The notes under the pieces were generated by a model that was not told the origin of the DNA, ran no database searches, and saw only the letters and a list, made by a program, of their open reading frames with translations. From Oikopleura dioica (lineage: Eukaryota; Animalia; Chordata), in NCBI GenBank assembly GCA_907165135.1, contig OU015569.1, positions 4,278,001-4,342,000 of the forward strand: a stretch of 64,000 nt of DNA, written 5' to 3'. Of this stretch, positions 22,978 to 26,765 are shown in pieces; the first letter of the stretch is position 1, and each line of letters opens with the position of its first letter. Position numbers and translations under genes: made by a program.

Positions 22978-24163
22978 ATGGAGGACGAGCTAGCGCCTGG
23001 AGCTAGTCCACCAGGTTATGGGCCTAGTTTCGGAGCCACCCTTGCAATCTTTGGCGCATTATCGGCTGGCGTTTCCATGGTTCTTCAAAAGGTATACGAG
23101 AGTTTTTGTCAGCTTTACTACGAGATTCAGGTTGGAGTCGCGAAATCAAAGGTAATTTGGTTTTGTGGTCTTGCTTGTCTGATTATTGGTGAAGTTTTGA
23201 CTGTTGCTGCATTCACTTATGCTCCTGCTGTGCTTGTTTCCCCTCTTGGTGCTTTCCGAGTAATTGTTACTGCGATATTAAGGTACGAAAGTGTTTAACG
23301 ATCGCAGAAGCCAGAAATTTTTAAGTACAGTCTGGTTGAAGGAGCGATTATCTAGAAACGGAAAGCTTGGTATCTTATTATCTGTGGTCGGCGCAACAAT
23401 GCGAAGGGTTTCAACCTTGATTAGGAAGATTTAAAAGTTTTCAAATAATTATCGGGGCATTTCAAAAAACCCGGCTCAAGATCGTTTACAACGCTCCGAA
23501 AAGCGTCAAAATCAAAACATTCCAAGATCTGGAGCATTATCTACTGACATCTAGGTTTATATTGTTTGTTTTTGGGGTATTCGCCGCCTCTGCATTCTTA
23601 TCGAGACGAGCGAAGATAAATGGAAGTCGAAATATTTATCTCTACGTCACTATTTGCAATCTTTTGGGAAGTTTGGGCGTACTTTTATCGAAAGGCATTG
23701 GAATCGTAGTTCAATCGGAACGAGGCAAAAATATTCAGAGAAAAATACTTGTTATCTATTAGAAACTTATTCTTTGCCCCTGAGTAGATCTTAGGCGGCG
23801 ACATGAGCATAATTCTGAGTCCTGTCGCATGGGCCGTTCTCCTTGGCGTTGGATACGGCGCTGTCTCCCAGCTTTATTATCTGAATCACGCGCTGCGGCA
23901 CTTTGACGCGGCGCAAATAGGATCCCTTAAATATGTTGGTACCAACGCGCTAGTTGTTGTTGGCTCGGTCATTCTATTTGATGAATTCGCATCAATGACG
24001 ATTCGGTAAACCTTTTTAAGGCGATCAGGATAAGAGATCATGTGTTTTCAGTGACACACTTGGACTCTTCTTGGGACTAAGTATAGTCGCCTTTGGAACA
24101 ACTTTTATGCACGGCTCGGATTTTTATTGCAAATCGAAGCCTGCCGGCATCAAAAAGTATTGA
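22978..24163 (+). CDS. NIPA: NIPA-family magnesium transporter
   Basis: WFCGLACLIIGEVLTVAAFTYAPAVLVSPLGAFRVIVTAIL, YVTICNLLGSLGVLLSKGIG, YLNHALRHFDAAQI; multi-TM; stop at 24161-24163. Confidence 0.85.
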
Positions 24164-24606
24164 AATATTTTAACTAGAAGATTTCGCTTTACGCGTTTTA
24201 TAGCCAAGAACCTGTTGTTTAATCAGATGGTCTATCAGTTATCCTCCCTTTCCTAATTATACCGCAAACTCCGATCGGCATAAGTGCTTTCAACAAAATC
24301 TTCTGTTTTTTATGAGTGCCCTTCTACTTCAATTACATGCCTTCTTCACTATTTTTGTACTTGTGCGAAAAGATAAATCTGTTTTTCATCACGTTTTCTT
24401 GCATTCGTTCATCGAACTTTAAATTTTCATATCCCAATTCAAAGCTAACTGATACAGTTGTCTTACCAACAAATCGCTCTTCCAATTTAATTCTGCTAAA
24501 ATTCAATTCAAGTGTGTCTTGAATTGTTGCTGTTTTTTATTAAAGTTTTACTTTATTTTCAAACTGATGCTTTATTATCTTCACCTGATGCCAAGTGAGC
24601 TCAGAA

Positions 24607-26765
24607 ATGAGTCTGTGTCGAGTGATAGGGTGGAGTAGGGCGTTCCGGTCGATGAGTTACACAATCCGACTTTCTAGAATGGCATCGGACACGCTGTTCG
24701 TGTCTGAGAAGCTTGGCAGCGACGAGAACAATGGAACGGAGCAATCCCCATTGAAAACCGTCTTGGCGGGCTTTATCGCCTCTCAAGGAAAGGTAACTTT
24801 TCGCATTCAAAGCAATCTTTACCGAATATGAAAGGCGAAAATTATGGTCCAAAATGCCGACAAGAAAGCTGAAGCCGCGTGGGTTGAGCTTTCACAGGCA
24901 CAAAGGAAGAAAATGACGAAATTGTACCAACAACACGTTCGAAAAACTGAGAAGGGCGCTGAGAACGAAGCTAAGAAGGCTGCACAGGCTGCGGCGGAGG
25001 CGGAAGCTCGCGAACGAAACTTGGCTGCAGCTAAGAAGATTAGCCTTACTCTTTATGAGTCCCTTCCTGCTGCCACCACTGTCAAAATTATCAACGCTAA
25101 GCCCCTCCGAGACTCACGCATCACTGTGAACGCATGGGTGCATCGAATTCGTCGCCAAGGAAATAATCTGATGTTCTTGGTCGTTCGAGATGGTACTGGT
25201 TATCTTCAGTTACCGTGTTTTAAATTTGTTTATCATGCGTTGAACTTGAACGGTTGAAGTCGATAATTTAAAACACGCGCCAGTGCGTCCTTACCGACAA
25301 GCTCTGTCATACTTACGACGCCCTCATTCTTCAGCCCGAAGCTACAGTCGAGCTCCACGGTCTGCTGGAAGCCGTTCCCGAAGGTAAAAATGCGGAAGGA
25401 GGTCACGAATTGAAAGTCGACTACTGGAGAATGATCGCAAATGCTCCTCCTGGTGGTGTTGAGAATGTCGTCAACAAAGAGGCTGATCCAGACACTCTTT
25501 TCGACAATCGGCATCTGGTCATTCGTGGTGAAAAGACATCCAAGATTCTGAAAATCCGATCTCACCTTATGCAGGGTAAATTTCTCTTATATCTCCGTTG
25601 CCCAATGAGTCTTCCTTTAAGCATTCCGAGAGCATTATTTCTCTCGCGGTTACCACGAGGTGACCCCTCCTTGTCTTGTTCAAACGATGTGCGAAGGTGG
25701 TTCGACTCTCTTCAAGTTTGATTACTTTGGTGAACAAGCATATTTGACCCAGTCTTCCCAACTCTACCTGGAGACCTGCATGCCTGCTCTTGGTGACGTA
25801 TTCTGTATGGCTGAGTCTTACAGGTACTTGATGACGCTTCTAGATCTATTGTAATCACGCCATTAACTCAACAACATGATTTCGAAACCTCTACGTAACA
25901 TTTTCTATTTAGAGCGGAAAAGAGCCGAACCCGGCGGCACTTGTCCGAGTACACTCACGTCGAAGCTGAATGTCCATTCATTACCTTCGAGCAGCTTTTG
26001 GACCGCATCGAGGACTTGCTTGTGGACGTAATTGACCGTCTGCTAAAGTCACCTGCAGGCCAGTACGTGTACGATCTTCATCCAAACTTCGTTCCCCCTA
26101 AGAAACCGTTTATGCGAATGGATTACAAAGATGCCATCAAGTATTTGAAAGAGCATGACATCAAAAAAGATGATGGCACTTATTACGAATTCGGTAAAAA
26201 TCTAATTGCTTTCAATTTTATTCATTTGAATCTAGGTGACGATATTCCTGAGGCTCCGGAGAGAAAGATGACTGATCAAATCGGAAAAGTGATCATGCTT
26301 CACCGATTCCCTGCTGAGATCAAGTCCTTTTACATGCCAAGATGCAAGGTAAACTATTCCGGCTGGTGAGAGTGACTAATTTTTACTGAGGACGACGAAC
26401 GAGTTACCGAGAGTGTGGATGTGTTGATCCCTAATGTTGGTGAAGTTATTGGCGGCTCTATGAGAATGTGGGACTATGACACATTGATGTCGAAGTATGC
26501 TGAAGAAGGAATCGGTGAGAGGAAAAACTCTCGCAAATATTTTAATGACTGTATTTTAAGACCCCAAAGACTATTACTGGTACACTGACCAGCGAAAGTA
26601 TGGATCATGCCCTCACGGTGGATACGGACTTGGTTTAGAAAGAATGCTCACTTGGTTGTGCGATCAATATCATATTCGTGATGTTTGTCTTTATCCCAGG
26701 TAGTGGAAGAACTTCTGTCCAGTGTAACAAGTTCATTTAGATACACTGGTCGATGCAAGCCTTGA
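24607..26765 (+). CDS. NARS1: Cytosolic-type asparaginyl-tRNA synthetase with an optional 24-aa N-terminal extension
   Basis: Eukaryotic N-domain [81 protein letters not shown] and [10 protein letters not shown]. ATGs at 24607 and 24679. Confidence 0.95.

Follow-up and report, generated by a model that had tools for sequence, protein, structure and literature searches.

The gene content of Oikopleura dioica raises the question of how asparaginyl-tRNA is supplied to its mitochondria. The mtDNA retains tRNA-Met as its only tRNA gene, and the mitochondrial aminoacyl-tRNA synthetases (aaRSs) have been lost save those for Gly, Phe, and Met, so that NARS2, the mitochondrial asparaginyl-tRNA synthetase (AsnRS), is among the losses; a full set of cytosolic aaRSs is present (Klirs et al., 2024; PMC11384887). 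This published report bears out two assumptions of the original prediction for the locus considered here, namely that most mitochondrial tRNA genes have been lost and that NARS2 is absent. The route by which cytosolic aaRSs would enter the mitochondrion is not discussed in that paper, which does not use the word "dual" or describe a layout with two spliced leader (SL) sites. Based on the analysis of one window, a stretch of 64,000 nucleotides of contig OU015569.1, it seems somewhat probable that a single AsnRS gene, through a choice between two SL sites, provides both a cytosolic enzyme and a presequence-bearing mitochondrial one.

The locus is the cytosolic-type AsnRS gene of the Okinawa lineage of O. 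dioica and lies on the + strand of the window (Table 1). In the searches, the mRNA contig L002 and database proteins served as stand-ins for the spliced Okinawa protein. The protein initiated at the second of two in-frame ATGs (ATG2) is colinear with human cytosolic NARS1 (8tc8; E 2.7e-230, residues 5-554) and with other animal cytosolic AsnRSs, and bacterial and archaeal AsnRSs score far below 8tc8 in the same comparison. As expected of a cytosolic NARS1, the product possesses the appended AsnRS_N domain (PF20917), an OB-fold anticodon-binding domain (tRNA_anti-codon, PF01336), and the class IIb core (tRNA-synt_2, PF00152). The O. dioica AsnRS proteins formed one cluster in the protein searches. 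The joined exons give an open frame of 578 aa without a stop, equal in length to the ORF of L002. Translation starts at ATG2 in the two NCBI models (CBY09464.1 and CAG5096130.1), so that an extension of 24 aa is left out, and the public Okinawa gene model is additionally short by 24 residues at a non-canonical intron. A lineage-specific non-canonical intron of 74 nt occupies 25210..25283 (+ strand), as placed by an RNA contig joint 25206->25281 with an ambiguity of 4 nt. It is a foldback or MITE-like insertion with 13-nt terminal inverted repeats (arms at 25214-26 and 25265-77), and it is missing in Norway and in lineage 3.

Table 1. Features of the AsnRS locus, in window coordinates.
Feature	Position	Strand	Evidence
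Two conserved intergenic patches	24426..24482	+	Invariant columns, four-lineage alignment
Site aligned with the Norway-type upstream SL acceptor (CAG/ACTG there, CAA ACTG here)	24560..24566	+	Alignment and sequence reading
Candidate SL acceptors upstream of ATG1 (Okinawa lineage): AG 24594-95, 24598-99, 24603-04	24593..24604	+	Sequence
Block of 146 nt conserved at the nucleotide level: ATG1, extension, downstream acceptor, ATG2, first 21 codons	24596..24741	+	Lineage alignment
In-frame N-terminal extension of 24 codons, presequence-like, long mRNA only	24607..24678	+	Sequence, RNA contig L002
TTTCTAG, main SL acceptor (SL joined after 24677)	24671..24677	+	SL reads and contigs
Exon 1 from ATG2, start of cytosolic AsnRS	24679..24792	+	Colinearity with cytosolic AsnRS; NCBI models
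AsnRS exons after exon 1, first four	24835-25209, 25284-25575, 25622-25823, 25913-26193	+	
AsnRS exons after exon 1, last four (stop TGA 26763-65)	26236-26348, 26391-26514, 26561-26699, 26741-26765	+	

The original prediction started from two in-frame ATGs that each stand behind an AG, and the window agrees with this description. ATG1 (24607-09), which has an A at -3, lies 2 nt after CAG 24602-04, and ATG2 (24679-81) lies 1 nt after TTTCTAG (AG 24676-77). The two are in frame with each other, and the closest in-frame stop upstream is TGA 24586. Farther upstream, the first of the conserved intergenic patches reads TTxATATCCCAATT and contains a CCAAT core (24434-38), and the second is AAATCGCTCTTC at 24471-82. 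Judged from the alignment, these patches are possibly promoter or outron elements.

All of the RNA evidence on 5' ends comes from other cryptic lineages, specifically the Norway-type sister lineage, and not from the Okinawa lineage of the window. Raw reads filed under the species label (X18-X20) belong to a different cryptic lineage, 88-95% alike to the window, a same-lineage run available as contigs (X1) does not cover exon 1, and a JGI scan for Okinawa-type contigs returned none. The SL sequence was taken as printed by Danks et al. (PMC6883708). A word search with exon 1 gave just a 41-aa ORF, and the extension-bearing ORFs came from members of a 90% cluster. In these data, the downstream acceptor at AG 24676-77 is an SL site, as had been proposed. 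The loose SL end CATTTTTGAGTCCGATTTCGATTGTCTAAC precedes 24676 in 30 raw reads (8, 8, and 14 in three runs, with an agreement of 0.98-1), and six assembled transcripts (L007-L011 and L014) read SL...TCTAACAG/AATGGCG, where the slash marks the junction. The short mRNA that results is the dominant form and has an ORF of 554 aa.

A long SL-mRNA also exists in the sister lineage. L002, a full-length metatranscriptome contig identical to contig L006, starts with the 3'-terminal 21 nt of the SL followed by ACTGGC, so that its junction reads ...TCTAACAG/ACTGGC where the genomic sequence in L012 and L003 is GCATCAG/ACTGGC. This junction lies 34 nt before ATG1, and the genomic AG immediately before it follows a pyrimidine tract. 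Because the SL end and the genome share just 3 nt at the junction, an assembly chimera is unlikely. Every intron has been removed from L002, it shares its 3' end with the short-form contigs, and the ORF of 578 aa (P0053, recorded on 2 contigs) exceeds that of the short form by the in-frame, presequence-like extension. Together with the short-form reads and contigs, L002 places two SL sites around the first in-frame AUG in the Norway-type lineage, and use of the downstream acceptor is not exclusive. The long form is rare, as at most one of about 42 reads over exon 1 (about 2%) enters the extension. Additionally, a uORF of 3 codons (ATGCTTTGTTGA) in its 5' UTR terminates 8 nt short of ATG1. Both points count against the mechanism proposed below.

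The position of the upstream site differs from the one foreseen. SL addition had been predicted at CAG 24602-04, and no reads support a junction at 24604; an upstream site that retains ATG1 was found, but at GCATCAG/ACTGG. In the window's lineage, the AG of this Norway-type acceptor aligns with AA at 24561-62 and is thus absent from the Okinawa genome, which presumably employs another acceptor. The three candidate AGs have 14, 12, and 10 pyrimidines in the 20 nt upstream (in the order of Table 1), and all lie 3' of out-of-frame uATGs at 24567 and 24588. Among the RNA reads examined, which derive from other cryptic lineages, no SL loose ends are listed at 24593..24604.

The extension itself has the composition noted in the original prediction, with 5 Arg, 5 Ser, and no Asp or Glu. 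Its net charge is +5, LCRVI matches the phi-x-x-phi-phi pattern, and its hydrophobic moment falls in the top 1.7% with an 11-residue window and in the top 12% with an 18-residue window. Composition and hydrophobic moment fit a presequence, and random ATG-started open 24-mers of the window score equally in 12 of 809 cases (1.5%); overall, 1.5-4% of the window's random ORF peptides resemble the extension. These properties suggest that the extension may act as a mitochondrial presequence, and R24-M25/A26 could be an R-2 cleavage site.

The extension is conserved, and its frame is open in Okinawa, in Norway, and in two further lineages, a test that the original prediction had set for sister lineages. 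Between Okinawa and Norway, where 68% of the synonymous sites of the mature coding sequence differ, only 6 of the 72 nt have changed versus about 49 expected at neutral sites (P 1e-14). The resulting replacements (S10T, R11K, F13L, and S15P) keep the character of the leader and its net charge of +5. In three lineages with coding sequences 6.9% divergent, the 72 nt are identical. Conservation extends over the 146-nt block, which shows 10 differences between Okinawa and Norway versus 25.8 expected from the CDS-wide rate (P 3.5e-4) and 0 versus 10 expected among the three other lineages (P 4.5e-5). This block reaches 63 nt beyond ATG2, where no presequence is encoded. Since the conservation is at the nucleotide level and the substitutions in the extension are spread evenly over the codon positions (2/2/2, no third-position excess), constraint on the encoded protein is not proven. 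The fold of the block gave no thermodynamic signal against shuffled sequence (z -0.17), and 24100-24900 matched no RNA family in Rfam. A two-sequence consensus fold contains one possible compensatory pair, in a stem enclosing the acceptor and ATG2, which is too little for claiming RNA structure. A distant AsnRS (P0019) with an apparent basic N-terminal extension was dismissed as evidence of extensions in other taxa, because its TTG start had been assigned by a prokaryotic gene caller and the real ATG is downstream. P0016 and P0029 carry similar ORF-caller extensions.

Under the proposed mechanism, the pre-mRNA of the single cytosolic-type AsnRS gene would receive the 40-nt SL at one of two sites. 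In most molecules, trans-splicing at TTTCTAG would remove ATG1 and leave 1 nt between the leader and ATG2, from which the cytosolic enzyme of 554 aa would be translated. In a minor fraction, trans-splicing at an acceptor upstream of ATG1 would allow initiation there, and the 24 basic, amphipathic, and acid-free residues of the 578-aa protein would direct it to the mitochondrion and presumably be cleaved off. Inside an organelle that has neither its own tRNA-Asn gene nor NARS2, this enzyme would charge tRNA-Asn that is likewise imported. The original prediction is partly supported, in that alternative trans-splicing occurs and mitochondrial import may be inferred.

Other explanations account for parts of these observations. 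The upstream ATG and its open frame could be a functionless chance feature of a non-coding outron. By a rough estimate, about 10% of genes would have an open in-frame upstream ATG by chance, and 34 of the 809 random peptides lack acidic residues and reach a net charge of +5 or more. However, neither the few changes between Okinawa and Norway nor the identity of the 72 nt in three lineages would be expected of such a feature, and the conservation appears to bring this explanation close to refutation. It is also very unlikely, though less so, that most of the presequence form comes from RNAs that escape trans-splicing, having their own cap through an alternative start or read-through from the NIPA-like gene, so that the switch would be whether trans-splicing occurs. 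Contigs L004 and L005 lack intron 1 and retain hundreds of upstream intergenic bases without an SL, and L004 extends into the spliced coding sequence of the upstream NIPA-like gene; moreover, O. dioica start sites that exclude trans-splice sites have been discussed (Danks et al.; PMC6883708). These contigs may, however, represent polycistronic RNA before processing or joins made during assembly, the upstream ATGs and ORFs in such long leaders would hamper initiation at ATG1, and the SL-capped long form is seen directly in L002.

An explanation that carries more weight, although still unlikely, is that the long SL-mRNA is a by-product. SL-capped long RNA retains the downstream acceptor and could therefore be a processing intermediate, formed at a cryptic upstream acceptor and re-spliced at 24677, or it could be rare noise. 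The 146-nt block would then be kept for reasons at the RNA or DNA level, for example because it helps the downstream acceptor to be used efficiently, controls translation start, or contains a promoter-proximal element, and mitochondrial Asn-tRNA would be supplied by import of precharged tRNA or of the short enzyme without a presequence. Apicomplexan mitochondria reportedly function without local aminoacylation. The scarcity of reads in the extension, the even spread of substitutions over codon positions and the reach of the block past ATG2, the difference in the upstream acceptor between lineages, and the possible compensatory pair around the acceptor and ATG2 all agree with a by-product. Alternative trans-splicing in trypanosomes is reported to be mostly noise, and there are general doubts about proteome diversification through it (PMC6821157). 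Against a by-product, the frame, ATG1, and the basic, acid-free character of the leader have been kept between lineages so divergent that their synonymous sites are saturated, and L002 represents a whole mRNA, with every intron spliced out and a normal 3' end. The N-terminus of the short protein is acidic and thus a poor import signal, and the block folds no more stably than shuffled sequence. Overall, the choice between two SL sites for a cytosolic and a mitochondrial enzyme remains the explanation we favor.

The layout of the AsnRS gene resembles that of HTS1, VAS1, GARS1, and KARS1 in yeast and human, where one gene encodes both the mitochondrial and the cytosolic enzyme and the presequence lies between two in-frame AUGs. 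Those genes select the AUG through alternative transcription start, alternative cis-splicing, or leaky scanning, and not through the position of an SL. The closest parallel is the IleRS of Trypanosoma brucei, which is dual-targeted by alternative trans-splicing, as the original prediction had stated (Rettig et al., 2012; PMC3273800). Both are single eukaryotic-type aaRS genes with two SL sites around the first AUG; in both, the long mRNA encodes an N-terminal extension and the more common short mRNA starts at the second AUG. The mitochondrial tRNA genes are entirely absent from T. brucei and almost so from O. dioica. The hosts, however, are a kinetoplastid protist and a chordate, and only part of the O. 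dioica genes are trans-spliced, unlike those of T. brucei. The IleRS extension has about 75 aa and an experimentally proven localization, whereas the AsnRS extension has 24 aa and a predicted localization. Additionally, the ratio of short to long mRNA is 3-4 for IleRS and at least about 40 for AsnRS, and the distance from the SL to the AUG of the short form is 44 nt and 1 nt, respectively. In Sileneae plants, the loss of mitochondrial tRNA genes was likewise accompanied by N-terminal targeting extensions on cytosolic-type aaRSs, seen in full-length transcripts (Warren et al., 2023; PMC10375062). In contrast to O. dioica, these plants have no SL trans-splicing, their isoforms arise by gene duplication or alternative transcription or translation starts, and the localization was confirmed by microscopy where that of the AsnRS leader is predicted. 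No published report of aaRS dual targeting by alternative trans-splicing in a chordate was found.

A broader possibility is that dual targeting through the choice of two SL acceptors is the rule for the cytosolic aaRS set of O. dioica, with the conserved block around both AUGs serving as an RNA switch that sets the ratio of long to short mRNA. This extension of the argument is speculative and, we think, rather improbable. Such a system would have followed the loss of 17 mitochondrial aaRSs and of nearly every mitochondrial tRNA gene. If true, it would be the first case of protein sorting by SL trans-splicing in an animal, and SL trans-splicing would do more than resolve operons and mediate TOP-like translational control. 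If the AsnRS case is confirmed, the pattern of acceptor, AUG, basic leader, acceptor, and AUG could be searched for in other aaRSs and in tRNA-processing enzymes. For AsnRS, the locus would explain how tRNA-Asn is charged in the mitochondrion of an animal without a mitochondrial AsnRS. The supply of organellar translation in O. dioica was left unaddressed by the 2024 mitogenome paper, and the locus offers a testable answer for one amino acid. If this answer is correct, a mechanism so far demonstrated in trypanosomes would extend to animals, and alternative SL acceptor choice would gain a function at the level of the proteome in a chordate.

The cytosolic-type AsnRS gene lies on the forward strand and carries two start codons in one frame, 24 codons apart and each behind an AG, as the original prediction described. 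The upstream ATG (24607-09) lies 2 nt 3' of a CAG (24602-04), the downstream ATG (24679-81) lies 1 nt 3' of TTTCTAG (AG 24676-77), and the closest in-frame stop on the 5' side is a TGA at 24586. The context of the upstream ATG has an A at -3, that of the downstream ATG an A at -3 and a G at +4. When joined, the nine exons encode 578 aa from the upstream and 554 aa from the downstream ATG, with the Pfam domains AsnRS_N, tRNA_anti-codon and tRNA-synt_2 and a match to human cytoplasmic NARS1 (8tc8; E 2.7e-230, residues 5-554). Because other animal cytosolic AsnRS start near the position of the downstream ATG, with short acidic N-terminal tails, this ATG is, by sequence comparison, the canonical cytosolic start and the 24-codon extension is lineage-specific. 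Both public models, CAG5096130.1 (O. dioica OKI2018_I69, Okinawa, chromosome XSR; identical to the window protein where modelled) and CBY09464.1 (Norway), begin at the downstream ATG.

AsnRS exons and candidate upstream acceptors that exclude both out-of-frame upstream ATGs
Feature	Position	Strand	Basis
Exon 1	24607 or 24679-24792	+	joined translation
Exon 2	24835-25209	+	joined translation
Exon 3	25284-25575	+	joined translation
Exon 4	25622-25823	+	joined translation
Exon 5	25913-26193	+	joined translation
Exon 6	26236-26348	+	joined translation
Exon 7	26391-26514	+	joined translation
Exon 8	26561-26699	+	joined translation
Exon 9	26741-26765	+	joined translation
Candidate AG	24594-95	+	sequence listing
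Candidate AG	24598-99	+	sequence listing
Candidate AG	24603-04	+	sequence listing

The 74-nt intron at 25210-25283 is found in the Okinawa lineage only, the Norway lineage and a third lineage being continuous there. In an RNA contig, 25206 connects to 25281 with a 4-nt ambiguity that permits no GT-AG phasing. The flanking CAGT direct repeat and the perfect 13-nt terminal inverted repeats (25214-26 and 25265-77) give the intron the look of a foldback or MITE-like element, inserted into a coding exon and precisely removed as a non-canonical intron. This intron is the reason that CAG5096130.1 lacks 24 residues.

Three raw RNA-seq runs labelled with the species name really derive from another cryptic lineage, which is Norway-type and 88-95% alike. 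Directly 5' of 24676, their reads (8, 8 and 14, agreement 0.98-1) carry the loose end CATTTTTGAGTCCGATTTCGATTGTCTAAC. Completed by the genomic AG, it equals the last 32 of the 40 nt published for the spliced leader (SL) of O. dioica, ACTCATCCCATTTTTGAGTCCGATTTCGATTGTCTAACAG (PMC6883708). The junction SL...TCTAACAG/AATGGCG also occurs in five JGI metatranscriptome contigs (L007-L011) and the Logan contig L014. From these reads and six SL-bearing contigs, TTTCTAG is the dominant SL site, with the downstream ATG one nucleotide behind the SL.

A longer SL-bearing form is represented by contig L002 (= L006; JGI Ga0314681_10025427, 2045 nt), whose 5' end consists of the terminal 21 nt of the SL, followed by ACTGGCTTTTTTGATGCTTTGTTGAGCTCAGAAATGAGT. 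Both L012, from the Norway genome, and L003 have ACTGGCTTTTTTGATGCTTTGTTGAGCTCAGAAATGAGT right after ...GTTTGTTCTCTTCGCATCAG, with its AG 3' of a pyrimidine tract. The overlap between SL end and genome at this junction is limited to CAG, which makes a k-mer assembly chimera unlikely. All introns have been spliced out of L002, its 3' end coincides with that of the short-form contigs, and it has a single 578-aa ORF from the upstream ATG; this exact ORF (P0053) is recorded on two contigs. There is thus a long mRNA that is SL-capped and looks mature. Its abundance is low: read depth over 24602-24647 was 0.04, 0 and 0.61 versus 10.7, 14 and 17 in exon 1 of the three Norway-type runs, or at most 1 read in ~42 for the long form, and such reads should align over the extension because inter-lineage identity there is 92%. 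Use of two SL sites, as had been proposed for this gene, is very probable in the Norway-type lineage.

The position of the upstream site departs from the original prediction: it was observed 34 nt 5' of the upstream ATG, whereas the predicted CAG is 3 nt from that ATG, and among the SL loose ends listed for the three Norway-type runs none falls at 24604. By alignment and reading of the sequence, the Norway acceptor CAG/ACTG corresponds to CAA ACTG at 24560-66, and that AG is therefore absent from the window genome. Also present in the window are a 22-nt insertion and, at 24567 and 24588, two upstream ATGs that are out of frame; a long mRNA should lack these ATGs if it is functional. They open a 24- or 17-codon uORF overlapping the upstream start unless the SL is added 3' of 24590. 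The Norway-type long 5' UTR (L002 14-54) has a 3-codon uORF, ATG CTT TGT TGA, ending 8 nt before the upstream start. Among the candidate AGs, the CAG originally proposed is a possible Okinawa acceptor. Contigs from the same-lineage RNA run X1 begin at 24858, 3' of exon 1, and no Okinawa-type contigs were found in JGI. A long mRNA comparable to the Norway-type one is fairly probable in Okinawa.

The extension is open, as anticipated, in four cryptic lineages: Okinawa, Norway (L012, L003, L002), a third (L001, L004, L005) and a fourth (L017, L018). Between Okinawa and Norway, the mature CDS has a pS of 0.68 (dS about 1.8) and a pN of 0.036, and the 72-nt extension has 2 synonymous and 4 non-synonymous changes. 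Both start codons lie in a 146-nt block (24596-24741) with 10 differences between Okinawa and Norway, where the CDS-wide rate predicts 25.8 (P 3.5e-4). The three non-Okinawa lineages do not differ at all in this block, against 10 differences expected from their CDS divergence of 6.9% (P 4.5e-5). In these alignments, nucleotide conservation of the block is stronger than coding constraint explains. Some catalytic-core exons are equally conserved, so the block ranks with the best-conserved parts of the locus but is not unique. The changes in the extension are spread 2/2/2 over codon positions and conservation runs 63 nt past the downstream ATG; the constraint therefore acts at least partly at the nucleotide level, where it may serve the choice of acceptor, initiation or the like. 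One compensatory change, from U-A to C-G, falls in a predicted 7-bp stem (~24644-50 with 24682-89) that surrounds the downstream acceptor and ATG; the folding energy of the block is no better than that of shuffles.

The extension has the arginine-rich, non-acidic character ascribed to it, with 5 Arg (4 Arg and 1 Lys in other lineages), 6 Ser/Thr, no Asp/Glu, a net charge of +5 and the phi-x-x-phi-phi motif LCRVI. The substitutions S10T, R11K, F13L and S15P keep this charge and the hydroxylated and hydrophobic character. Against a background of 809 random open 24-mers taken from the window, each starting with ATG, the peak hydrophobic moment of the extension ranks in the top 1.7% when 11 residues are taken at a time and in the top 12% with 18 residues; only 12 of these 24-mers (1.5%) lack acidic residues, carry a net charge of +5 or more and also equal its 18-residue moment. 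R24-M25/A26 would fit as a candidate R-2 processing site, leaving a mature end resembling the cytosolic one. The mitochondrial need that had been put forward is borne out by the literature: tRNA-Met is the sole tRNA found in the O. dioica mitogenome, and an HMM scan recovered every cytosolic aaRS and mitochondrial aaRS for Gly, Phe and Met only, in agreement with the expected absence of NARS2 (Klirs et al., 2024, PMC11384887). Dual targeting is absent from the discussion in that study.

The conservation of the extension all but excludes an ORF open by pure chance. Block conservation cannot by itself prove that the extension is translated; on a rival reading, the block would be regulatory and the long RNA an intermediate or noise. 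The rarity of the long RNA, the nucleotide-level conservation, the difference in upstream acceptor between lineages and the uORF of the Norway form favor this reading; the splicing, 3' end and intact ORF of L002 are those of a mature-looking mRNA. Alternatively, the presequence form may be made from non-trans-spliced transcripts. Contigs L004 and L005 contain the extension and retained upstream intergenic sequence and have no SL, and L004 extends back into a spliced upstream NIPA-like gene; both look like unprocessed or polycistronic RNA.

This NIPA-like Mg transporter gene (in the region 23800-24163) is on the same strand as AsnRS, and L004 connects its spliced coding sequence to AsnRS across a ~440-nt spacer. 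The AsnRS 3' UTR ends near the start of a downstream Ran GTPase gene (ATG 27055). NIPA, AsnRS and Ran may form a polycistronic unit, with a first spacer far above the 60 nt used for O. dioica operon calls. Within 24426-24482, two short patches, ATATCCCAATT with its CCAAT core and AAATCGCTCTTC, do not vary among the four lineages in an otherwise unalignable spacer, and may be a promoter or outron element.

The invoked precedent holds: T. brucei IleRS has the same layout of two SL sites flanking the first AUG, its presequence-bearing mitochondrial isoform is encoded by the long mRNA, and its short mRNA is 3-4 times commoner (PMC3273800). In Sileneae plants, cytosolic aaRS were retargeted after mt-tRNA loss (PMC10375062). 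The complete proposal, in which two SL sites yield dual forms with a predicted mitochondrial function, stands at slightly better than even. Since the layout resembles that of T. brucei and, as first supposed for chordates, no report of this mechanism was found in the literature searched on Oikopleura, Ciona, tunicates or C. elegans, the AsnRS locus would be a chordate case of an already known mechanism, with its localization predicted.
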